In this document: piece after piece, positions 6,637 to 47,862 of the stretch
Position numbering within the stretch: the stretch's first letter is position 1
How the letters are laid out: the number at the start of each line of letters is the position of its first letter
Sequence record: PV764603.1
Reading direction: 5' to 3' (one strand)
Length of the DNA: 64,000 bases
Translations under genes and position numbers: made by a program
The notes under the pieces: model-generated
Told to the model about the DNA's origin: nothing
Seen by the model: only the letters and a program-made list of their open reading frames with translations
Databases searched by the model: none

Positions 6637-7056
6637 ATGGATTTGACTGTCGAACTTACTACTGAGCCCTCCCGAAAACCATTCAACGGACCTGTCCAAA
6701 CGGAGACGTGGTGCTCAGATGGAGTTCCGGTGGTAGTGGTTTGGTACGCCACCCACCAATATGACGGGAAGTGGTGGGCAATCGTGACGGACATTGAACT
6801 TCCGAAACGATTCAAGCGCTTCCCTCGCGCAGTCCTGCACGAACTACTGCGCCATGCTATCAACGCGCTAGGCACTGAGTACCCCGTGCTCTACCCCTGC
6901 GCCCGTAAATTGCTGCGCCGAGTTGAACCGCTCTACATGCGCAGTCTCATTCAAGGCTACAAGCTCGGCATGCAATACCTCAAGTTTTCGCCGAATGGTA
7001 GCAAGCATCCATTTATGATTCTGAGAGAAGCCAATGATTCGCAATCCAGTGTTTGA
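6637..7056 (+). CDS. Hypothetical protein
   Basis: 139 aa ORF downstream of the promoter motif, overlapping the next gene. Confidence 0.6.
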   Translation: MDLTVELTTEPSRKPFNGPVQTETWCSDGVPVVVVWYATHQYDGKWWAIVTDIELPKRFKRFPRAVLHELLRHAINALGTEYPVLYPCARKLLRRVEPLYMRSLIQGYKLGMQYLKFSPNGSKHPFMILREANDSQSSV

Positions 7057-7546
7057 CCTATTCGATCTTGCTCCACACCACTCCACGCTCAAGTGGCTTG
7101 AAGAAGAACTGGAAGTCAGCGAAGCGACTGCTGATGATACCGATGAGTTCGATCAGAAGCGCTTGATCCATCTGCGCCGCCTACGCGATTTGGTTGCGGC
7201 CCTTCCGCTGGCAGCTACCCGCTATCAGCAGTCCCTGCGAGAAATGGAAGCTGCGCACTCGGAAGCAGTGTCCCTCACCAAGGTTGTGATGGATGGCCTT
7301 GCGAACACGCCGGGTGTTAGCTATGAGTTCGTGATCCACAATGGAGAGCCGGTGTTGAAGGTGGTGCCGCGTGCTCTTGAGTACACCGTGGCGATGGGCG
7401 AAGCAGGCGACAACTACATTCGGTCTGTGGCTTTCCAAGGGAAGTTCACCCTGCCTCACTCTTTCCGGTGGCATGCTCTTTGGGAAGCCATGCAAGCTGT
7501 AGCCTTGAATCCAACTGTTGAGTACGCCGATGGCCAAGCAACCTGA
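7034..7546 (+). CDS. Hypothetical protein
   Basis: 170 aa co-oriented ORF with an RBS-like site. Confidence 0.6.
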   Translation: MIRNPVFDLFDLAPHHSTLKWLEEELEVSEATADDTDEFDQKRLIHLRRLRDLVAALPLAATRYQQSLREMEAAHSEAVSLTKVVMDGLANTPGVSYEFVIHNGEPVLKVVPRALEYTVAMGEAGDNYIRSVAFQGKFTLPHSFRWHALWEAMQAVALNPTVEYADGQAT

Positions 7547-10189: not shown

Positions 10190-11185
10190 ATGAAAAAATT
10201 CACCGCACCTCCTGACAATACTTGGGTGCAGCGACAGTTGTTCTCTTGGTGGAAGGAAGCAATCGACCACGGTGGCATGGACCCCGTGGATCAATCACGT
10301 AACGAATTCCTGCGACCTTCCGCCCTCCCTTTCTGTCCCCTCAAAGTCGGCTACAATCGTGTGGTCAATGGCGTGGAGACAGAGCGTTACTCCAGCTTCA
10401 ACGAAAGCTTCTACACCTCCATCGGTACAGCGGTTCACGAACTCTTGCAGAATTTCGTGGGCCGTTTGGCCGTTTCCAAAGGCGTAGAACTCAAGGTCGA
10501 GACACTAGGCCATTGGCACTGCAAGGCATGCGGTCGGAAGCGTAGATTCACCATCTACAAGCCATGCAAGTGCGGAGGCACGCCCGAGTACGAGGAAATC
10601 TCTATCCACTGGCGTACCACCGTTGGCCACATCGACAAGGTGATCCGGGTGGGCAACTGCCTCTTCATTCTTGACTACAAGACCACGGGCTCTATGGCGA
10701 TACGCAAGCATCGCGCTGGCGCTCCTGCTGGTGAGCCTTACTTCCCATACCCAGCCAACCGCGCGCAGATCATGCGTTACGTCGGTCTGTTTGAAAAGGT
10801 GTTCGCCAAGGAGTTTGAACCCGGCGGTCGCTTTGAAGGCACTACGGTCATGGGCGCAATCTTGGCTTACGTGAGCCGCGAGACTGTCCGTGACGTGGCG
10901 TTCGTGTACTTGCCCGCTACGCGTAAGCGCAAGAAGAAGGAATATCGGAAGGCAGTGCGCGACGATGCACTGTTCGTCACGATGAAGGAAGCTGTAGCCA
11001 AGCGTTCCAAGAAACTCTTCATCGAGTTGATCGAGGAAAAGCCCTGCGCTGATCGGGATGACTACGATCAGAAGATGCACAGCAGATACGATGAGTGTCC
11101 GTTAGTCAACGTATGCTTTAGACGCCGACAATTGCTCAAACAAATCGACAAGGCCCTAAAGGGTCAGATCAAACCCAAGGACTAA
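10190..11185 (+). CDS. Cas4-like / PD-(D/E)XK exonuclease
   Basis: RPSALPFCP, IGTAVHE, GHID...ILDYKT, QIMRY, C-terminal C...CPLVNVC (Fe-S-type), plus an inserted CKAC...CKC zinc ribbon. Confidence 0.8.
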   Translation: MKKFTAPPDNTWVQRQLFSWWKEAIDHGGMDPVDQSRNEFLRPSALPFCPLKVGYNRVVNGVETERYSSFNESFYTSIGTAVHELLQNFVGRLAVSKGVELKVETLGHWHCKACGRKRRFTIYKPCKCGGTPEYEEISIHWRTTVGHIDKVIRVGNCLFILDYKTTGSMAIRKHRAGAPAGEPYFPYPANRAQIMRYVGLFEKVFAKEFEPGGRFEGTTVMGAILAYVSRETVRDVAFVYLPATRKRKKKEYRKAVRDDALFVTMKEAVAKRSKKLFIELIEEKPCADRDDYDQKMHSRYDECPLVNVCFRRRQLLKQIDKALKGQIKPKD

Positions 11186-12970: not shown

Positions 12971-14677
12971 ATGAGCAAGAAGAAAACGGGAGGGGCACCG
13001 TGGGGAGGGTGGACTCCCGCCTCTGACTTCCGAAGCGGAGCCAGCTACAACTTTGTTCCTGCGGCAAGTGAGTATTCAAAGCGCGGAGGCGTGCATATCT
13101 ATGTGCGCTATGGTCGAGGTCCGAGCCACGTAACTGTGGTGGATCATGATAGCGACTTCATGCGTATCAAGTGTCCTGACCGGGAACTGCTGATCGTAGC
13201 CAATGGTCAGCGTGCCCATATCTACCGGCCCATGCAGGGCACCTACGACGAGTTCTACAACTTCTCGCCGTTCTGGGAACATTCGTCCGCCGACCTTGAA
13301 TATGGTTGCGTGATGACGAACTACACCAGCTACATCGGTAAGGAGAAACGCTCTTCGGGCATCCGTCGCAAGGACTTCCGCTACGGGATCGACCAGCATA
13401 CCAAGATCATCGCAGACTCCGGTGGCTTCCAGTTGGTCAAGGGTACGGTGGACTACATCGACCCGAAGGAACTGGTCACGTGGTACAACGACAATGTGGA
13501 TTGGGGCATGGTGCTGGATACGCCGCTGGCGTCCAACGGCCTTGAAATCTACACTCGGTCCGCCAAGGTGCAGGCTGAGAACACACGCATCATGATGGAC
13601 AACAAGCGGCCGGGTCTGGAACTGCTGAACATCATCCACGGTGCGGTCGGCAAGGAAATGGACACCTTCCGCAAGATCGTTGAACGCCCTGACATTGATC
13701 GCCTTGCAGTCGGTGGTATCTACTTCGGTTCCATCCTGTCGAGTATCGACCGCCTGTGCGCCATCATGACAGGTGGGCAGCGATACAAGCACTATCACGC
13801 GCTGGGTATCGCCAACATCACGCAGACGATTCCCTTGATGCGTTTGAGTGGTAGCGACATTGCGCCCCTCATCACCTCGGATAGTAGCTCGCACCTACAG
13901 GCAGCTAATGGGCGCAAGTATTACAAGCCCAACGGCACCGAAGCGCTGCCGGAAGTGCTGTTCTACGCTGACGCGGGTGGCTACCATCCGGGCGGCAACC
14001 AGCTGCTCAACTGCACCTGCCCTATCTGCTCAGTGGTGAAGTACACCGACGTTCTAAGCATGGTCAATAGCAACACGATCACGCTGCTGCTGGTGTACCA
14101 CAATCTGTTCTCGATCCAAATGTTCCAGAAGTCCCTGTACGATCGGGTGGCGGGTGTGCCTGTCGGCGAAGCAAAGGATGCTTTGCGCACCTTGTTCGGT
14201 AACTCCAAGGCCAAGCGCAAGCAGCTGCAAGAGTTCTTCCACACGTTGGACTTTGTTGATATGGTCAAGACCTCGGGCTTGGCTGATGCGCGAAAGGAAT
14301 TCGCGTTCTACTTGCCGAAGACGGACAGTGACACAGGTGCTACCAAGACTCTGTTCTCGGGCATCGAAATGGAAGAGACGGCTGATCCCACCCGAGACTT
14401 GGCGATCCTCAAGAAGTATGAAGACGCCCAGGCTGGTAGGCTCAAGTTGTCCTCTACCCCTGAACGCAAGCCTGCCCCACCGAAGAAAAAGAAGGTGAAG
14501 CTGGAAGCTGAGGAAGGCGCGGCTCCTGAGCCCGAGGTTGTCGAACCTGTCAAGTTGGACAAGGCAGGCCGCAAGAAGAAGAACATCGCCAGCGCGACCA
14601 AGATCGGTAACAAGGCGATGGGTGTGACTCGAAGCAAACGCCCCGGTAAGCAGAAGGTCAAGAAGAAAAAGAAGTGA
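12971..14677 (+). CDS. dpdA: TGT-fold transglycosylase, DpdA/arcTGT-like (putative DNA 7-deazaguanine insertase)
   Basis: IADSGGFQ, MVLDTP, IIHG, LAVGG, HYHALG, TSDSSSH, zinc site CTCPIC...HNL. QueD is encoded nearby. N-terminal extension and Lys-rich C-terminal tail. The dpdA symbol is an inference from context. Confidence 0.8.
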   Translation: MSKKKTGGAPWGGWTPASDFRSGASYNFVPAASEYSKRGGVHIYVRYGRGPSHVTVVDHDSDFMRIKCPDRELLIVANGQRAHIYRPMQGTYDEFYNFSPFWEHSSADLEYGCVMTNYTSYIGKEKRSSGIRRKDFRYGIDQHTKIIADSGGFQLVKGTVDYIDPKELVTWYNDNVDWGMVLDTPLASNGLEIYTRSAKVQAENTRIMMDNKRPGLELLNIIHGAVGKEMDTFRKIVERPDIDRLAVGGIYFGSILSSIDRLCAIMTGGQRYKHYHALGIANITQTIPLMRLSGSDIAPLITSDSSSHLQAANGRKYYKPNGTEALPEVLFYADAGGYHPGGNQLLNCTCPICSVVKYTDVLSMVNSNTITLLLVYHNLFSIQMFQKSLYDRVAGVPVGEAKDALRTLFGNSKAKRKQLQEFFHTLDFVDMVKTSGLADARKEFAFYLPKTDSDTGATKTLFSGIEMEETADPTRDLAILKKYEDAQAGRLKLSSTPERKPAPPKKKKVKLEAEEGAAPEPEVVEPVKLDKAGRKKKNIASATKIGNKAMGVTRSKRPGKQKVKKKKK

Positions 14678-15078
14678 AGACCATCACAGACTTGATGGCG
14701 CTTTGCCCGAAGGTTCAGTACGAGAAGGCACGAGAGACTCGCATCTTGAATGCCAGCGCCGGACTGAGCCGTTCGGGCCTTCGCACCATCAGAGCCGTAG
14801 TACAGCGCGTCAGCGACAAGGGCGCGCATGACAAGCATCGGGTAGAGATTCAGTGCGTAGAGCCTGACACTCTACTCGGTGAGGGCTACGTAAAGGTGTG
14901 GTGTGACTGCGGATTCCAAGTCTTCTACGGACAGGAAGTGCTGCTGACTAAGCAGGGTGCCAGTAGCATTCGGTACTCTGACGGCAGCATGCCTAACATT
15001 CGCAATCCGGGCGGAGTCATGATGCTCTGCCACCACACTCTGCGCATCGCCTTAGCAATACGATCCAAGAAGCTATGA
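14674..15078 (+). CDS. SWIM-type zinc finger protein
   Basis: VWCDC...LCHH (CxC-xn-CxH); GTGA overlap. Confidence 0.65.
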   Translation: MKTITDLMALCPKVQYEKARETRILNASAGLSRSGLRTIRAVVQRVSDKGAHDKHRVEIQCVEPDTLLGEGYVKVWCDCGFQVFYGQEVLLTKQGASSIRYSDGSMPNIRNPGGVMMLCHHTLRIALAIRSKKL

Positions 15079-16091
15079 GTCGCAACTCTGCATCTATCCA
15101 AGCTACAAAGACAGTCAAGGAAACGATGCAGGGACGCTGGAATGATAGTCAGATGATGACTGCATTGGACCAGCTTCTCATGCTGGCCGTGGAGCCTATC
15201 ATCAGGCACACGGAGTTCTTTGATAGAAACATGCCAGCGATGCTTTGCTGGTACGCAACAAACACAGGACGCAAGATTAGTTCGGTTGACAAGCCCAAGG
15301 TTCTGCACCTCATGAACCTGTACTTGTTGGCCGACAAGGCTCAGGATAAGGTGCGCTTGGTGCGCCGAATGAAGCTGGAGAGAAACATCCTCTTCTTCAT
15401 CATCAAGCGCTTCTGCACGTTGGCCAAGGACTATCCGAAATTGGAGGTGCTTTACGCTCAGAAGCGCCTGCCGTCGCGTCGGATAGCTATGGAGAGAATT
15501 GAGCAGCTAGTCGGTGCGGGTAAGAACCTAGGTCGCGTGCTTCAACGCGTCAAGTCATGGGAAACCGAAGCTACCAAATTCAGGAATCAGATTCTTGAAC
15601 GGTTCATGCGGCACGCCATGATGCAAGCGGTGAAGTTCAACCGGGAGAATCCACGCACTGACCTTGAAGACGTAACGCAAAACTTTGTGCTGGCGGTGAA
15701 CAAAGCGGTGAACAAGATGAACCCCGATAAGGGAACGCTCGCTCCTTATACTCAGAACTGGATCACGAATGCCAAGCATTCGCCTACACAGTCTCATGAG
15801 TACGGGATCGCATACTCCCTGTCTCCGCATGCAAAGCGGGCTGTGGCTAGGGGCGATCTACAACTGGTGAATATTTCTTCGGACTTTGAGACTGAGGAAG
15901 TGTTCAACCAACCGGATAGCACAGATGAGTTTGAGAAACTCACCGAGGAAGATCGGGCACAGCGGGTACGCCTGCTGGCAAAGATTGCTGACCCGGATGG
16001 TTTTGCGCGCCAAGAGTTGGGCATTGAGGAACTGCTGCTTCCGCATGAAGTGGTACGCATCGACGCCAAACGACATTCTTGTAAACAATAA
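15075..16091 (+). CDS. Phage RNA polymerase sigma factor (sigma70 region 2-like)
   Basis: DLEDVTQNFVLAVNKAVNKMNPDKGTLAPYTQNWI aligns with sigma region 2 (DLIQEG.IGL.KAV.KFDP.KG..FSTYA.WWI). Confidence 0.75.
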   Translation: MSRNSASIQATKTVKETMQGRWNDSQMMTALDQLLMLAVEPIIRHTEFFDRNMPAMLCWYATNTGRKISSVDKPKVLHLMNLYLLADKAQDKVRLVRRMKLERNILFFIIKRFCTLAKDYPKLEVLYAQKRLPSRRIAMERIEQLVGAGKNLGRVLQRVKSWETEATKFRNQILERFMRHAMMQAVKFNRENPRTDLEDVTQNFVLAVNKAVNKMNPDKGTLAPYTQNWITNAKHSPTQSHEYGIAYSLSPHAKRAVARGDLQLVNISSDFETEEVFNQPDSTDEFEKLTEEDRAQRVRLLAKIADPDGFARQELGIEELLLPHEVVRIDAKRHSCKQ

Positions 16092-16114
16092 GTGATTCAA
16101 CAGGAGACCCAACT

Positions 16115-17685
<1,571 letters not shown>

Positions 17686-17792
17686 CCTCGGCAGTCCCTG
17701 ATTGGCCTAAAAACACAGGAAAATCCTTGCCTCAAAACGCCCAAAAGTCGGTAGGATTAGGGGTTTTGAGGCATCCTGGGACCATCAGATTT

Positions 17793-17828
17793 GGGAGGAC
17801 GTGCTACCCCACGTCCTCCCTTATTTTT
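17793..17828 (+). terminator. Intrinsic terminator between SSB-like gene and recA
   Basis: 11-bp stem gggaggacgtg/cacgtcctccc followed by ttattttt. Confidence 0.85.
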
Positions 17829-17851
17829 CGGTATTTTCGACGGAATCCAGT

Positions 17852-19321
17852 ATGGCAAAGAAGGCTGTCAAGCCTGCAAAGAAATCGGTAAAGAAGGGAG
17901 CGGCCAAGGCTGCCTCCAAGAAGAAGGAAGCCCCAGCTAAACTCAAGGCTTCTGCACCTGCGGTAAAGGTTTGGCGTCCTAACTACGACGACGTTATCAC
18001 GGTCGTGGAAAAGAAGTCCAAGCTGTCTAGCAACATGCAGAATCGTTTCGACTACGCCATGCACTCGGGACTGCTCTGTCAGGACATGCTGCTGGGTGGT
18101 GGCTACGTGTATGGTGCAATGGTAACGAACGTCGGTGGTGAACAGTCTGCCAAGTCCACCAACTGCTCTAACTTCCTCGCCACCTTGCTCGACCTGCCGG
18201 AAGAAGAACAGCCCGGTCTGATTGTGTCTGCCGACCCCGAGGGTTCGACCGATGCAGTCTACATGAGCAACATGATGAAGAATCGAATTCCGGTAGAGGA
18301 AATCTTTGGCCAGCGCGCCAAGGACGGGTCGTGGGCTGTACGTCCTCGCATCCGCTACTACCCGGAAGAGCGCGGTGAACTACTGCTCAATGCACTGGCG
18401 ATGATCCTGCGTCGTCTGCCGGACATGGAGTTGATGGATCAGCAGTGGTACTACGTGTACGAGAACACCAAGGAGAACCGTAGGATCGTTGGTGATCGGT
18501 ACAACAAGAGTTTCTTCTCCAAGCACAACAAGTTCTACGTACAGGCACCGAACAACGCACCGCAGTGCGTGATCGTGTTGGATAGCTGGGTTAGCTTGGT
18601 CCCTGAGAACATGGACGATGATGATCCGGCAGCGGGCCTCGCAGCGGTTGCACGTCTGCTGGCCGCTAACCTGTCGAAGATCAAGGGTAAGCTGCGTCGT
18701 AAGAACGCGATCCTAATGGGTGTGAACCAGCTTCGTGAGAAGCCGATGGCGCAGGGTGATCCCCGCTATGAACCCGGTGGTCAGGCGCTGCGCTTCCAGT
18801 CGGACATTCGTATCTGGCAAACGCCGCGTGCTCTTAGCACCCCGCAGATCGGCCTGAGTGGTGCGAGCGGTCCTGTGCATGAAGAGACTTCGATCACTGG
18901 CGAAGGTACTGACAAGTATCGGTACATCCACATGGTTGCGAAGAAGAACAAGCTGGCCGTTCCGGGCCATGAGTGCTTCGCTCGCATTTGGGTGGCTGAC
19001 GAAGACGGTATCGCGCATGGCTTCTGTCCCGCGTTCGACGTGTGGTACTTCCTCAAGATGACGGGCCAGTTGTCCGGCAGCCAGAAGAAGTTCTCGGTCA
19101 AATTGAACAAGGGTCAAGAGTTCAAGGCCAACATGGTTGACCTCAAGAAGATGATCCTGCTCAAGGGCGCCGAGCGCAAGGAACACTTCCGTAAGATGAA
19201 GCTCAAGCCGTTCGACATAAAGGCGTTCTGCCTCAAGCAGATCAAGTCGGGCAAGGCTAAGGAACTCATGTACCAGCATTCCAAGGCGGGTGCCGCTGAG
19301 GAACAGGAGGACGAGGAATAA
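17852..19321 (+). CDS. recA: RecA/UvsX-like recombinase
   Basis: Variant Walker A GGEQSAKST, VIVLDSWVSL, A..AR, NQLREK, EPGGQALRFQSDIRI. Start at ATG 17852; Lys/Ala-rich N-terminal tail. Confidence 0.9.
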   Translation: MAKKAVKPAKKSVKKGAAKAASKKKEAPAKLKASAPAVKVWRPNYDDVITVVEKKSKLSSNMQNRFDYAMHSGLLCQDMLLGGGYVYGAMVTNVGGEQSAKSTNCSNFLATLLDLPEEEQPGLIVSADPEGSTDAVYMSNMMKNRIPVEEIFGQRAKDGSWAVRPRIRYYPEERGELLLNALAMILRRLPDMELMDQQWYYVYENTKENRRIVGDRYNKSFFSKHNKFYVQAPNNAPQCVIVLDSWVSLVPENMDDDDPAAGLAAVARLLAANLSKIKGKLRRKNAILMGVNQLREKPMAQGDPRYEPGGQALRFQSDIRIWQTPRALSTPQIGLSGASGPVHEETSITGEGTDKYRYIHMVAKKNKLAVPGHECFARIWVADEDGIAHGFCPAFDVWYFLKMTGQLSGSQKKFSVKLNKGQEFKANMVDLKKMILLKGAERKEHFRKMKLKPFDIKAFCLKQIKSGKAKELMYQHSKAGAAEEQEDEE

Positions 19322-19638
19322 TGATGCAACAGGCTATCGACAAACTGCGTGGAAGGTTCGGGCAGCCTGACGGTAGCCTGTCCATCACAGTGAGCACTAA
19401 GCACAAGTCCGAAGCAGAAGTGCTGACGCTGAACCTCACTGTCACGTACCTCTATTCACAGATCGGGAACACTATCGTGCTCGACCCCATCAACGCGACA
19501 AGCCTAAGCGCGTTCCTGCGCCGACAGCTTGAACCGAAGATCATCAAGGCATTCGCCAAGGTGAGTGAGTCTAAGGCACGATTGGTTCCCGGCTCTGACC
19601 TGAAACACCTAAACCGCATTCAATTGATGGAGAAGTGA
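19321..19638 (+). CDS. Hypothetical protein
   Basis: TAATG overlap with recA. Confidence 0.6.
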   Translation: MMQQAIDKLRGRFGQPDGSLSITVSTKHKSEAEVLTLNLTVTYLYSQIGNTIVLDPINATSLSAFLRRQLEPKIIKAFAKVSESKARLVPGSDLKHLNRIQLMEK

Positions 19639-20099
19639 GCGTGTACCGTAGCACGAAAACATGGGGCCATGAACGAGGCTTTAGCTGTGCCTTCCGACAG
19701 TGGCGTGCTCACGACAGCCATTGCCGATTGGTTCACGGGTACGCCCTTGGCTTCAAGTTTGTCTTCGAGACAGACCAGCTGGACGAACGCAATTGGGTAG
19801 TGGACTTCGGGGGCCTTGACGACCTCAAGCAAATCCTCGCGGACAACTTCGACCACACAACCATCATCGCCGAAGACGACCCGGAACTGGAATGGTTCAG
19901 GGAAGCAGACCGCCGTGGTGTCCTGCGCCTTGTCGTATTCCCATACGCGGGTTGCGAGCGCTTCGCCGAAATGGTGTACGCTGTGACCGAACAGTGGCTA
20001 AAGGATGCAGGGTTCAGTCCTCGCTGCCGGTTGGTATCGGTAGAAGTAAGTGAGCACGGCGCAAACTCTGCGATCTATCATGGCAGTAGTCAAAGCTAA
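19635..20099 (+). CDS. queD: 6-carboxy-5,6,7,8-tetrahydropterin synthase (QueD/PTPS)
   Basis: SCAFRQWRA..SHCRLVHGY, NWVVDFGGL, FDH, GCERFAE, V.EHGANSA.Y. Confidence 0.9.
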   Translation: MSVYRSTKTWGHERGFSCAFRQWRAHDSHCRLVHGYALGFKFVFETDQLDERNWVVDFGGLDDLKQILADNFDHTTIIAEDDPELEWFREADRRGVLRLVVFPYAGCERFAEMVYAVTEQWLKDAGFSPRCRLVSVEVSEHGANSAIYHGSSQS

Positions 20100-20610
20100 C
20101 AGTCGGGTGACTGTGCGGGAGAAGCTGTACCGTGCAGCCATCGGGCACATGGTCAAAAGAGGATGGGCCGTCCATCGGGAGTTTGGTCTAAATGGTAGGG
20201 CGCGGCGAGGTGGACAGGGCCACTACCGCGCGGACCTATTCTGCAACACCTTGAAAGGCAAGTACGCCGCAATCGAGATAAAGTCCAGCGTCAGCGATCT
20301 ACGTGCTGACAAGAAGCTGCACAACTATTGTGGATACTGCCATCGTCTGTGGATCGTAACCACGGAAACGGTGTGGAAGAAAATGAAGGACAAGTATCCG
20401 TTTCCCGAAGGCTGTGGCGTATTGGTCCTGTCAATGAAGACAGGGTTGCTGCGCTCAGTTAGGCGGACTAAAGAGTACGATCTAGGCGATGACGTATGGC
20501 GTTCCATTGCTATGCGCCTGTCATATCGTACAGCGGAATTCAGCAGACGCAACACGGTTCGACGCCGAGTATACCTAACAGAAGCGGAAGAGAAGGCGTC
20601 GGGTACTTAG
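20080..20610 (+). CDS. mmcB: MmcB-family PD-(D/E)XK endonuclease
   Basis: RADLF...IEIKSSVSDLRADKKLHNYCGYCHRLW matches the MmcB (DUF1052) pattern; overlaps the end of queD. Confidence 0.75.
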   Translation: MAVVKANSRVTVREKLYRAAIGHMVKRGWAVHREFGLNGRARRGGQGHYRADLFCNTLKGKYAAIEIKSSVSDLRADKKLHNYCGYCHRLWIVTTETVWKKMKDKYPFPEGCGVLVLSMKTGLLRSVRRTKEYDLGDDVWRSIAMRLSYRTAEFSRRNTVRRRVYLTEAEEKASGT

Positions 20611-20652
20611 TGTATTGACGAGAGTGTTATGCACTCGCTATCGGAGAAACTC

Positions 20653-21750
20653 ATGCAACACAAGAAGAATTCGTTTGAGGAATTGGCTGCGCTCAAGGGT
20701 CACTTGAAGCCGAATGCTGAGAACGTCATTGATTCATTTACCGGGCGCTACGCCTTCCTGTCTGAGTCCTACCCTGCGCCTATTGAGCATGCAGGTACAG
20801 TGTTCCCTTCGGTGCTACACGCCTTCCAAGCGAGCAAGACCAACGATCGGGCACGTCACGCAATGATCCTCCTGATTGATGATCCCCATGAAGTCAAGAA
20901 GTTCTCGTGGGAAGAGAAGGTGGCATGGCAGTGGATTCGGAAGAAGCTGCGACTGCGACTGGAAATGCGTCGTCAGCAATTCCCCTATGGCAGCACTCTG
21001 GCCCAGCAGTTGATCGACACAGGCGAAGCCAAGATTTACTTCCACAATCGTTTCCTTGATCGGTATTGGGGAGTCACCCGCCGCAAGAATGGTCCGTACA
21101 AGGGAGACAATCATGACGGCTTCATTCTGATGCAGGTGCGCGACGAACTGAATTTCCGGTCCAAGCTGCATGACGCCTACTTCGAGTGCATGGCCAATCC
21201 CGAGAACGCCAACCTGAGTCAAGCGGCTCTGGCGTTGAACGCTTTCGGTGTGCTGGGTATTCCGTTCGCTCACATCTTCGACAACAAGACTGCCTTTGAC
21301 AACTCGGACGTGGTCCCACGTGCGCTGGTGTTGGATGATCGCGTAGAGTTCACTATCGGTACGTACTCGCGCCCTCCTGTCGTCCTGACCATGACGCAGC
21401 TGGTGTCGGGTGCCTTTAGTGAGCACCTGAAACGTGGCCTCGCAGATGGCACACTGAGCATCCAAGGCAACAACGGCCTCAGCGTAGTTCCTCCGCCGAC
21501 CGAGAAGGAACGAGCACTGCACGTCTCCGATACCATCATCAAGATGCTGACGGCAATGGGAGTCACCCGGTACAATGGTGAGCCTACTCAATGTCACACG
21601 CTGGAAGAGTTCAACAGCTGTACGCAGCTGCCGTGTTGGTACATCGACCCTAGCGACCCTATGCACTTCCATGTTCGGTACATGCCTACAGACCCTCAGC
21701 GTGCTATGTGCACTGTCGTTCTGGAGCGTAAGGAAGGTAACGCAGAGTGA
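20653..21750 (+). CDS. NADAR (YbiA-like) domain fused to an unknown C-terminal domain
   Basis: YAFLSESYP, FPSVLHAFQASK, DRYWG, GDNHDGFILMQVRDEL. GGAG RBS before ATG 20653. Confidence 0.75.
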   Translation: MQHKKNSFEELAALKGHLKPNAENVIDSFTGRYAFLSESYPAPIEHAGTVFPSVLHAFQASKTNDRARHAMILLIDDPHEVKKFSWEEKVAWQWIRKKLRLRLEMRRQQFPYGSTLAQQLIDTGEAKIYFHNRFLDRYWGVTRRKNGPYKGDNHDGFILMQVRDELNFRSKLHDAYFECMANPENANLSQAALALNAFGVLGIPFAHIFDNKTAFDNSDVVPRALVLDDRVEFTIGTYSRPPVVLTMTQLVSGAFSEHLKRGLADGTLSIQGNNGLSVVPPPTEKERALHVSDTIIKMLTAMGVTRYNGEPTQCHTLEEFNSCTQLPCWYIDPSDPMHFHVRYMPTDPQRAMCTVVLERKEGNAE

Positions 21751-46691: not shown

Positions 46692-47086
46692 CCGTCAAGC
46701 TCACAGGATGGACCAAGGCCGATGGGCACACGTTGTGGATGACACAAGATGGCGAACCTGTGTTCCGTGAAGGCCACCTGCCTGACCTCGGCCCCAACAA
46801 AGCTGTGCATCTTACGGGCAAGATGCCAGTGGACGATCCTCGCTACCTCAAATACCCAGGTTACGAATACCTTGAGGCCATCAGCGACGATCAAACCCAG
46901 TACCTGATCGAGCCCAAGCGCAACACTCGCCTGCGGATACGTAGGAGCCCGACGTTGGTAGGTGGGTGGACTATGGACATTCGGTCGTATGGTGAATGGG
47001 TTGTCTACCTTCCAGACGGTAGCAGCAAGACCATGATCCAAGATACGCTCGACAAAATCATTCGCTACGGTCCGGTGGGCGAATGA
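46688..47086 (+). CDS. Hypothetical protein
   Basis: AAGGAGG RBS. Confidence 0.6.
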   Translation: MTVKLTGWTKADGHTLWMTQDGEPVFREGHLPDLGPNKAVHLTGKMPVDDPRYLKYPGYEYLEAISDDQTQYLIEPKRNTRLRIRRSPTLVGGWTMDIRSYGEWVVYLPDGSSKTMIQDTLDKIIRYGPVGE

Positions 47087-47862
47087 GGATTTTAGCCAAG
47101 TACGGCACCGGGAGTTCAGCTGTCTACATTGCAGTGGATGAGAGCACTCCCGATGTGGAGTACGTCGTAACCTGCGCCGTAGAGCTACAGATTGGTCAGC
47201 AAGTTGAGGCGTCCAGTTGTTCGCTGCACACAGGGGTGCACACGCACCTTCCGTCTTACCTGTCGTTCCCCTACCTGTACTCAGCCATGTCCGGTTTGTG
47301 GTTGCGGTGCCGCCGTCAAAGCAATAGGCGTGCGCTGGTGCTGGGTTTAGGTGGCGGCAATGCCTCGCGTTACATTCGCTACACGTGGCCCGATGTAGCC
47401 CTAGTGTCTGTCGAAGCAAGTCCCGAAATGATCGCGGTGGCAAAGCTGTGGCCTGACGTCGGACCAGTCATTAAGGGCGATGCAGTGCAAGTGGTCAAGC
47501 GTACCGAAGCTGGGTACCTTGATTTCGTGCTGGTGGACTGCTATCCCTTCGAGAACAACACGATAGGCCAGCGGTTCTTTTCAACCGAGTTCCTGCGAGA
47601 GCTACGTAGTGTGTTGACCGACGACGGGATCGTGGCTTTCAACTTCATTGATGACGTGCCCCAGCTACCCGTAGCGGAGGTTGGGTTCAATGGAGGTGTG
47701 TTGGTGCGAAGCCCTGCGCGGTTACGGGAATCAAACAAGGTGGTGATGCTTAGTACGTCGCCGCTTGATCCCAACGAGTTTGTTACCGAGTGTCATTCAT
47801 CCAATCCAGCTTACGCTTTGTCGCGGCAGCTGACTGACTTTACCTTTGAGGCATACCCATGA
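47083..47862 (+). CDS. Spermidine-synthase-like class I SAM-dependent methyltransferase
   Basis: RALVLGLGGG, VSVEASPEMIAVAK, GDAVQVV, DFVLVDCY, F...FLRELRSVLTDDGIVAFN. Confidence 0.8.
   Translation: MRILAKYGTGSSAVYIAVDESTPDVEYVVTCAVELQIGQQVEASSCSLHTGVHTHLPSYLSFPYLYSAMSGLWLRCRRQSNRRALVLGLGGGNASRYIRYTWPDVALVSVEASPEMIAVAKLWPDVGPVIKGDAVQVVKRTEAGYLDFVLVDCYPFENNTIGQRFFSTEFLRELRSVLTDDGIVAFNFIDDVPQLPVAEVGFNGGVLVRSPARLRESNKVVMLSTSPLDPNEFVTECHSSNPAYALSRQLTDFTFEAYP

Follow-up and report, generated by a model that had tools for sequence, protein, structure and literature searches.

A putative 7-deazaguanine DNA modification system with a distinct TGT-family enzyme in the replication module of Xanthomonas jumbo phage PhiXhv-16

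Introduction

Phages can protect themselves from restriction enzymes, and in vitro from Cas9, by modifying their DNA with 7-deazaguanines, a well-established form of counter-defence. To our knowledge, all that is known biochemically of the inserting enzymes comes from bacterial DpdA, DpdA1 and DpdA2. In phage 9g, DpdA and Gat-QueC together put 2'-deoxyarchaeosine (dG+) into DNA and block EcoRI, and it is when Gat-QueC takes the place of QueC that dG+ results (Hutinet 2019). The DpdA2 enzyme of phage nt-1 has been shown experimentally to insert preQ0 into DNA (Hutinet 2019, Cui 2023), while the DNA of Pseudomonas phage Iggy contains dPreQ0 (PMC10484667). The subject of the present analysis is a related locus in Xanthomonas phage PhiXhv-16, a jumbo myophage of 229,154 bp that infects Xanthomonas hortorum pv. 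vitians. The analysed stretch, here called the window, has 64,000 nucleotides and corresponds to bases 1-64000 of record PV764603.1 (100% match, identical coordinates). It encodes a 568-residue protein resembling tRNA-guanine transglycosylases (TGTs), together with QueD, an enzyme of the preQ0 pathway. The reading favoured here, with a probability of roughly 0.7, is that PhiXhv-16 DNA carries a 7-deazaguanine that this transglycosylase would insert; the odds that the base is plain dG+ are put at roughly even.

A predicted guanine-exchange enzyme of the TGT superfamily

The coding sequence at 12971-14677 has the same coordinates as GenBank protein XYR93320.1, whose product label is 'hypothetical protein'; for 19635-20099 the label reads 'QueD-like'. 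The features of the window that matter for the argument are the following.

12971-14677, plus strand: TGT-superfamily guanine transglycosylase, candidate DNA 7-deazaguanine insertase (568 residues, XYR93320.1), assigned from motifs, family alignment, PDB profile and Foldseek
12971-13306, plus strand: family-specific, beta-rich N-terminal domain (residues 1-112), from invariant residues and the AlphaFold2 model
13307-14071, plus strand: catalytic TIM barrel (residues 113-367), which holds the Asp triad as well as C348, C350 and C353, where the zinc subdomain starts, from hhalign to DpdA2 and profile alignment to the archaeosine tRNA transglycosylase (arcTGT)
14072-14431, plus strand: helical C-terminal part (residues 368-487), to which the zinc ligand H377 belongs, from helices of the AlphaFold2 model
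14462-14674, plus strand: Lys-rich basic tail (residues 498-568), predicted to be disordered from composition and low model confidence
14674-15078, plus strand: small conserved open reading frame (ORF) of 134 residues, a possible partner protein, overlapping the transglycosylase stop by 4 nt and syntenic in relatives
19635-20099, plus strand: QueD, 6-carboxytetrahydropterin synthase, the second preQ0-pathway step, from Pfam PTPS and phrog_2389

The motifs that the first-pass annotation had read from the letters are all found in the translation, namely DSGGFQ (149-154), LDTP (182-185), IIHG (221-224), AVGG (246-249), HALG (276-279), DSSS (304-307), CTCPIC (348-353) and HNL (377-379). In the family alignment, the catalytic residues D149, D183 and D304 are invariant (25/25 sequences) and align with the matching motifs in arcTGT and DpdA2. 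The same holds within the family for S150, G151, G152, Q154, N220, G224, R244, H276, L278, G279, T302, S303, C348, C350, C353, H377 and N378, and the base-contacting H223 is nearly invariant. The zinc site has the form CxCxxC-x23-H and is built from C348, C350, C353 and H377; CxCxxC...HN is present in 139/151 full-length family members, with the x23 spacing in 110. In the well-studied DpdA of Salmonella, Asp95 is the general acid/base, Asp130 and His181 act on the base, Asp256 is the nucleophile and the zinc site is CXCX2CX22H (PMC10164549). The corresponding positions in the phage protein, with roles assigned by analogy, are D149, D183, H223, D304 and C348/C350/C353-x23-H377. Because each of these key residues has a counterpart, the protein is predicted to be a catalytically intact guanine-exchange enzyme of the TGT superfamily, with its zinc residues in place.

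The annotation's impression that the protein stands closer to archaeal than to bacterial TGTs is also borne out. The NCBIfam arcTGT model is matched at E=7.8e-7 and tgt_general at 9e-4, and a PDB search with the family profile reaches the archaeal structure 1iq8 at 9.6e-10, compared with about 2e-3 for bacterial Tgt. The hidden Markov model alignment to arcTGT takes in the DSGxFQ and LDxP motifs as well as CxCxxC...HN. Single-sequence searches reveal little of this relationship: the protein falls under the cutoff of every curated model (18.2 bits on TIGR00449, for example, with a cutoff of 47.6), has no match to Pfam TGT (PF01702) at E<=0.01, and has no match in PADLOC. At the same threshold, 18/25 family members individually match PF01702. 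Its recognition required the family profile together with a structure model.

The AlphaFold2 model, built on the family alignment, has a predicted template-modelling score (pTM) of 0.77, and confidence is high from the N-terminal domain through the barrel to the C-terminal helices. A Foldseek search with this model gives 28 PDB matches at E<=0.001, all of them TGT, QTRT or DpdA proteins, including human QTRT1 (2e-10), arcTGT (6e-10), bacterial Tgt (about 1e-8) and DpdA 7UI4 (4.7e-7). The PhiXhv-16 genome contains no second ORF of the TGT superfamily.

Pathway genes and the proposed route to the modified base

QueD starts 4.96 kb downstream of the transglycosylase gene, past the sigma factor, SSB-like and RecA/UvsX genes, as had been noted from the sequence. 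It matches Pfam PTPS at 2e-16 (60.5 bits, cutoff 22.4) and phrog_2389 at 1.7e-43, and scores 36.3 on TIGR03367, under the cutoff of 89.25. With the QueD of Pseudomonas phage Iggy the protein shares 55% identity, and with that of phage Motura 74%. Its catalytic Cys is kept in a CxxxHGY motif instead of CxxxHGH, a variant common to the QueD proteins of Iggy, Motura and phiST. The possibility that this gene encodes the decarboxylase DpdL was ruled out, since DpdL has Leu at the position of the retained Cys and the motif is that of Iggy QueD.

FolE, QueE and QueC were said to lie outside the window, and a search of the whole genome did locate FolE, QueE and a Gat-QueC fusion elsewhere in the record.

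223351-224031 of the record: FolE (Pfam 9e-28)
220000-220899 of the record: QueE-type radical-SAM protein, whose best NCBIfam matches are QueE models
108566-110089 of the record, minus strand: Gat-QueC fusion of 506 residues (Pfam QueC 2.3e-49, 168 bits; GATase_7 1.5e-8)

Aligned over its full length, the QueE-like protein shares 28-32% identity with QueE of nt-1, HVTV-1, CP220, NCTB and GR7B/GR11A. The Gat-QueC protein begins with Met-Cys, which provides the Ntn nucleophile Cys2, and has the PP-loop SGGMDS and a C-terminal Cys cluster; 98% of its length aligns, at 32-34% identity, with the Gat-QueC proteins from the 9g-like Nonagvirus phages JenP1 and JenK1. Judged by these matches, the FolE-QueD-QueE-(Gat-)QueC pathway is complete in PhiXhv-16. 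No QueF, DpdL or preQ0 transporter was detectable in the genome. A gene annotated as 'thiamine biosynthesis protein' (record 86865-87548, minus strand) was considered as a candidate QueC and ruled out, as it encodes an adenylyltransferase of the ThiF/E1 family (Pfam 5e-21). This protein also matches the NCBIfam anti-phage Cap2-like model (E=8.8e-14) and may be related to ubiquitin-like conjugation or counter-defence.

Gat-QueC lies in a minus-strand block at 106003-115260 of the record. The block also encodes a GFO/IDH/MocA oxidoreductase (Pfam 3.2e-9), an annotated glycosyltransferase, a PIG-L deacetylase (3.5e-7), three unassigned proteins, a 544-residue GNAT-domain protein (1.7e-14) and a Leu/Phe-tRNA-protein transferase. 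These neighbours might further decorate the deazaguanine base, or they might be unrelated to it.

In the mechanism proposed here, FolE would convert GTP to dihydroneopterin triphosphate, QueD would make 6-carboxytetrahydropterin and the QueE-type radical-SAM enzyme would make 7-carboxy-7-deazaguanine. Gat-QueC would then turn this compound into preQ0 and, with glutamine-derived ammonia, into the amidine base archaeosine (G+). After replication, the 568-residue TGT-fold enzyme would swap guanine in the double-stranded phage DNA for preQ0 or G+ by the double displacement of TGT and DpdA enzymes, with D304 as the nucleophile forming a covalent enzyme-deoxyribose intermediate and D149 as the general acid/base. 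D183 and H223 would read the base, and the Cys3-His zinc site would hold the barrel insertion. The Lys-rich disordered tail, perhaps with the N-terminal domain and the small ORF product, would give affinity for DNA. The expected product is dG+ in virion DNA, which would be resistant to the restriction enzymes of the host. Since the pathway is complete and includes Gat-QueC, G+ is predicted as the base, and dG+ is expected because this Gat-QueC resembles that of the 9g-like phages that make dG+. The annotation's statement that the final base could not be named is in this way superseded by a prediction, made by analogy.

Terminal domains and the small downstream ORF

Two extensions had been proposed, and both are present, although shorter than stated. 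At the N-terminus, the excess over arcTGT is about 53 residues rather than about 130, as residue 118 of the phage protein aligns with residue 65 of arcTGT; about 110 N-terminal residues are without a sequence match to any TGT, and searches of Pfam and PDB with this domain also gave no sequence match. A31, D70, R71 and D93 are invariant there, and a CPDR(E/D)L motif is found family-wide. In the full-length model, residues 21-80 have a per-residue confidence (pLDDT) of 78-91. When the domain was modelled from its single sequence, pLDDT was 47, too low for a fold search.

The C-terminal half of the model contains helices at 368-393, 398-409, 413-435, 437-443 and 473-487, and Pfam detects no PUA or arcTGT C1-C3 domain in it. 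The low-confidence region as a whole begins near residue 452. The strictly Lys-rich tail comprises 71 residues (498-568), not more than 100 as claimed, and carries 21 K and 4 R, with a net charge of +17 and a pI of 10.5; its pLDDT is below 50, and the model is disordered over 498-563. Basic tails are common in the family, with K+R making up a median of 27% of the last 60 residues, compared with 13% in DpdA2.

The small ORF that follows has a conserved C-x-C...C-x-H pattern and a basic C-terminus. Among ten relatives' loci examined, its homologs stand directly 3' of the transglycosylase gene in seven (L011, L012, L017, L019, L020, L022 and L023), and L025 has a homolog some 9 kb upstream. Searches of Pfam and PDB gave no assignment for it. 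A resemblance to the SWIM zinc finger is unsupported, with no Pfam SWIM match and nothing meaningful in PDB. The product may be a partner subunit of the transglycosylase.

Family distribution and association with Que genes

Homologs of the window protein reach E=1.5e-216, which shows that its gene is no chance reading frame. A word-indexed search gave 25 homologous clusters, mainly on long metagenomic contigs, and an exhaustive profile search gave 1304 representative clusters at E<=1e-3, of which 268 pass E<=1e-30. Among the best 150 matches listed, most span nearly the entire profile, including the N-terminal region. By tblastn, the family is found in 21 phage records, comprising five Xanthomonas/Erwinia relatives, Vibrio phages GR7B and GR11A, nine Pseudomonas putida jumbo phages, NCTB, BCSR5, Motura (two records) and Phosso. 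The scans of GTDB and IMG/VR depend on short conserved patterns. With patterns from an alignment of eight sequences, four IMG/VR loci were recovered on contigs of 134-295 kb, and no relative was found in 185,579 bacterial and archaeal species (one genome each), an absence that is suggestive and not proof; patterns from the single protein gave no match in GTDB genomes or IMG/VR. Taken together, these searches suggest that the family is limited to large phages. In P. putida phage Aura (locus L020:7001-8587, PP496437.1), the annotated coding sequence begins at 7217, but in the tblastn search similarity to the conserved N-terminal domain already starts at 7001, so the deposited gene model probably cuts this domain off.

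At least one Que gene is present in each of the genomes of these 21 records, all from cultured phages. In Motura, the family member gp026 forms part of the contiguous series QueD-QueC-AsnB-like-gp026-hypothetical-QueE-hypothetical-FolE. QueE occurs in GR7B, GR11A and the nine P. putida phages, with QueC also in GR7B, and QueD occurs in BCSR5 and Phosso. The 2019 supplement lists NCTB with FolE, QueD, QueE and QueC but with empty DpdA columns; the family homolog of this phage is BN7874_014, annotated as hypothetical. In GR7B (locus L021:5983-7573, MT366760.1), two adjacent QueC paralogs are followed by three unassigned genes and a lysine 2,3-aminomutase, an arrangement that suggests a different downstream deazaguanine chemistry.

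In the window, the gene order is transglycosylase, small ORF, sigma factor (phrog_17569, 8.6e-50), SSB-like gene (phrog_15004, 4e-64), UvsX/RecA (Pfam 7.5e-13), a 105-residue ORF, QueD, an MmcB-like gene and a NADAR-domain gene. Nine other loci, drawn from cultured phages, metagenomes and IMG/VR, likewise have the transglycosylase gene within a conserved replication/recombination block. Seven of these have the small ORF directly after it, then the sigma factor and RecA/UvsX genes and usually the MmcB-like gene. For Motura, incorporation of the deazaguanine into DNA was predicted computationally by Iyer et al. 2021 (PMC7824862). Both this type of system and a part for the family in it had thus been foreseen by computation, and the subfamily itself is uncharacterised.

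Alternative explanations for the enzyme and its product

Several observations weigh against DNA modification by this enzyme. In sequence, the protein is nearer to arcTGT, a tRNA enzyme, than to bacterial DpdA, and it keeps the N-terminal beta region, whereas bacterial DpdA is without the TGT lid. The sole tRNA of the phage, at 146763-146838 of the record, is tRNA-Asn(GTT), which belongs to the queuosine family. Outside Motura, the Que genes are dispersed and do not adjoin the transglycosylase, and the genes next to Gat-QueC are sugar- or acyl-modifying genes that could alter the end product. Even for phage 9g, it is undecided whether Gat-QueC acts before or after insertion (Hutinet 2019). The words deazaguanine, queuosine, transglycosylase and restriction do not occur in the PhiXhv paper, which reports no DNA modification, and in the literature searched no family member has been experimentally tested, named as a subfamily or structurally analysed.

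If the DNA is modified, the final base could still differ from plain dG+ and be dPreQ0 or dADG, should the Gat domain be inactive or work differently, or a derivative decorated by the products of the Gat-QueC neighbours. DpdA2 enzymes are promiscuous, as the DNA of nt-1 carries dPreQ0, dG+ and dADG together; the block around Gat-QueC holds the oxidoreductase, glycosyltransferase, deacetylase and GNAT genes that might carry out such decoration; and amidotransferase arrangements vary among relatives, with QueC and an AsnB-like protein in Motura and two adjacent QueC paralogs in GR7B. However, the PhiXhv-16 Gat-QueC keeps Cys2, the PP-loop and a full-length likeness to the dG+-making Nonagvirus proteins, the genome has no detectable QueF, DpdL or preQ0 transporter, and the sugar genes may serve an unrelated purpose. 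A different base is on this evidence unlikely, though it deserves to be taken seriously. A bolder proposal, which we regard as rather doubtful, is that the protein typifies a sixth subfamily of the DpdA type that is specific to jumbo phages, differs in mechanism from DpdA1-4, acts as a core component of replication and recombination, possibly at or behind the fork, and works with the translationally coupled small Cys/His protein and the N-terminal domain; its product might be decorated to an undescribed 7-deazaguanine derivative.

The enzyme might instead be a tRNA-guanine transglycosylase that places preQ0 or G+ in host tRNAs or in the phage tRNA-Asn and so tunes translation, leaving phage DNA unmodified. 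The best sequence matches among curated models and PDB entries are to the archaeosine tRNA transglycosylase, the top Foldseek matches are tRNA enzymes, and the N-terminal beta region is kept as in TGTs. The phage tRNA-Asn(GTT) would also fit, as its G34 is a natural substrate of bacterial Tgt. Such a role is nevertheless improbable. The protein lacks the arcTGT C1-C3/PUA domains in Pfam searches and has a C-terminus that is helical and then disordered; its score on the tRNA-enzyme model is far under the cutoff (27.9 against 350 bits); its closest named phage relative, DpdA2, works on DNA; and the gene is syntenic in a DNA replication/recombination module, has a basic tail and belongs to a family found in phages only. 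Xanthomonas, moreover, possesses its own Tgt. When 9g DpdA was expressed in E. coli, it modified plasmid DNA and did not substitute for Tgt in tRNA (Hutinet 2019), and according to a 2023 survey, every phage known to have 7-deazaguanine in its DNA encodes a DpdA-family protein. It is still more improbable that the Que genes merely boost the preQ0 or queuosine supply of the host and that the TGT-like protein performs no exchange, serving for instance in DNA binding or abasic-site processing. Such a function would agree with the finding that the gene belongs to the replication module's conserved core also in loci that have no Que gene within 10 kb, and TIM-barrel DNA enzymes such as Endo IV do resemble DpdA structurally (PMC10164549). 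Yet the three Asp residues, the base-reading His and the zinc site show no or almost no variation across the family, which argues for retained base-exchange chemistry, and Que genes are present in every complete genome that bears the TGT-like gene.

Insertion of a 7-deazaguanine into phage DNA by the window enzyme thus remains the preferred reading. The first-pass annotation had proposed that the phage modifies its G residues, and this gains support from the intact TGT-type enzyme, the complete pathway and the co-occurrence with Que genes. That DNA rather than tRNA would be the substrate we infer from context and by analogy with characterised phage enzymes, and we likewise infer what the final base is, what the extra domains do and that the modification is protective.

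Neighbouring genes and further observations

Several other genes of the window lie close to QueD. The 105-residue ORF (19321-19638, plus strand) is without assignment, and its end overlaps the QueD start. The MmcB-like gene, which has a nuclease fold (20080-20610, plus strand), overlaps the end of QueD by 20 nt. In two relatives (L011 and L012), the slot directly upstream of the MmcB-like gene, occupied by QueD in PhiXhv-16, holds a weakly Nuc_deoxyrib_tr-like gene. Further downstream, a 373-residue protein (20629-21750, plus strand) has an N-terminal NADAR domain (Pfam 1e-13). Proteins with this domain can take ADP-ribose off guanine in DNA, and the gene could be another counter-defence gene that acts on guanine.

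Upstream in the same module, a gene at 10190-11185 (plus strand) bears the annotation 'CRISPR/Cas system associated protein', which is a label only, and the same label is found at the corresponding position in phage Aura (L020:2366-3466). At 16001-18000, the coding strand shows a purine skew (GC skew 0.207, AT skew 0.246) far over that of the rest of the window, and this stretch coincides with the SSB-like gene at 16115-17584. Finally, an annotated polyamine aminopropyltransferase, similar to spermidine synthase, is encoded at 47083-47862 (plus strand) amid many small unassigned ORFs; polyamine-metabolism enzymes are reported to be encoded by numerous bacteriophages (PMC9992855).

Significance

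The family represented by the window protein has at least 268 clusters and is located in the replication modules of large phages, and it was missed by the 2019 survey, in which NCTB is without DpdA. The retained zinc site, lost in DpdA2, together with the new domains makes these proteins a useful link for studying the conversion of a tRNA enzyme into a DNA enzyme. PhiXhv-16 and its relatives are also under development as biocontrol agents against bacterial leaf spot of lettuce. If the prediction is true, the modified DNA would influence the way in which these phages deal with host restriction systems, as well as the reliability of genome sequencing, digestion and detection.

Comparison with known systems

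The reference proteins were those of CAjan, Iggy and JenP1 for DpdA1, VPFG_00171 of nt-1 (the sole TGT-like ORF of the nt-1 Que cluster) for DpdA2, CGPG_00065 of phiST (259 residues, locus-tag mapping confirmed) for DpdA3 and HVTV1_69 for DpdA4; the DpdA3 of CP220 was not found in the 40-kb stretch of that phage that was examined. With phmmer, the window protein has no significant cross-match to these DpdA1-4 members, the DpdA1 E-values all being at least 0.28. In hhalign comparisons, the family matches DpdA2 with a probability of 94.9% when a single sequence is used and of 98.0% (E=2.4e-13) with a 24-sequence profile, over 196 core columns only; the match to the DpdA2 profile spans residues 118-321 of the window protein. 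The values are 6.8% (E=0.0053) for DpdA1 (CAjan DpdA), 12.8% over 92 columns for DpdA3 (CGPG_00065) and 1.7% for DpdA4 (HVTV1_69). Foldseek places the DpdA1 of Bella96 at E=1e-4 with a template-modelling (TM) score of 0.27, and Pfam finds no DUF6610 (PF20314), the DpdA4 domain, in the window protein. A further candidate assignment, to DpdA3, arose from the 2019 grouping of NCTB with Campylobacter phages as 'no DpdA'; it was ruled out by the comparison with CGPG_00065, a tblastn search with which recovered no member of the window protein's family.

The closest relationship is to the 464-residue DpdA2 of nt-1, also a phage TGT-fold enzyme co-encoded with FolE, QueD, QueE and QueC. Its barrel core is homologous from DSGGxQ to the (S/Y)DS(S/T) nucleophile motif, and Foldseek gives E=4e-10. 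The two also differ. The Cys3-His zinc site is found in 0/120 DpdA2 proteins and in 139/151 members of the window family; the median position of DSGG is residue 75.5 in DpdA2 and 128 in the window family, about 50 residues further in; and DpdA2 tails are not basic, whereas basic tails and a small conserved ORF downstream are features of the window family. The DpdA2 profile recovers no TGT in PDB, unlike the window-family profile, and none of the 120 DpdA2 homologs listed falls in the window protein's family. Because DpdA2 differs in zinc site, DSGG position and tail, the family is placed by these profile comparisons as a separate branch, sister to DpdA2 in the core and distinct from DpdA1, DpdA3 and DpdA4.

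The arcTGT of Pyrococcus horikoshii (1IQ8/1J2B) is the best sequence match among solved structures (profile E=9.6e-10) and shares the DSGxFQ, LDxP and CxCxxC...HN motifs with similar spacing (Foldseek E=6e-10). This enzyme acts on G15 of tRNA and has C-terminal C1-C3/PUA domains, which are absent from the phage protein; the latter adds the N-terminal domain and the basic tail, and scores 27.9 bits on TIGR00432 (cutoff 350). Bacterial DpdA of Salmonella Montevideo (7UI4; PMC10164549) is a TIM-barrel DNA-guanine transglycosylase with the same three Asp residues, base-contacting His, zinc site and double displacement. It is nevertheless distant: the phage protein scores 8.4 bits (E=0.84) on NF041059, for which the cutoff is 200, the family profile reaches 7ui4 only at E=0.32, and the TM-scores of the model to 7ui4 are low (0.28/0.36). 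Bacterial DpdA is without an N-terminal lid, whereas in the phage model some 110 N-terminal residues form a beta-rich region; it has its own Ins1, Ins2 and large Ins8, requires the DpdB ATPase and belongs to a restriction-modification system, not to phage counter-defence. The annotation of the PhiXhv-16 record contains no dpd cluster, although no search aimed at DpdB was made. The proposal of a 'divergent DpdA subtype' is accordingly fair in that the family stands apart from DpdA1-4 and from bacterial DpdA, but the protein stays below the curated DpdA model, and the literature searched holds no subfamily name beyond DpdA4.

At the level of whole systems, the dG+ system of 9g and other Nonagvirus phages shares its pathway logic and the Gat-QueC fusion with PhiXhv-16, but its enzyme is a DpdA1 of about 300 residues and its genes form one tight cluster, in contrast to those of PhiXhv-16, which are spread over 229 kb. 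Motura has a transglycosylase of the same family (Foldseek E=4.9e-29, TMt 0.77; tblastn 27% identity) and a QueD 74% identical to that of PhiXhv-16. Its genes, unlike those of PhiXhv-16, are all contiguous, its amidotransferase is a separate AsnB-like protein next to a short QueC, and its downstream ORF lacks homology to the small ORF that other relatives conserve. The alignments indicate that the window family retains the ancestral zinc subdomain and arcTGT-like motifs, to which it adds an N-terminal domain and a basic tail.

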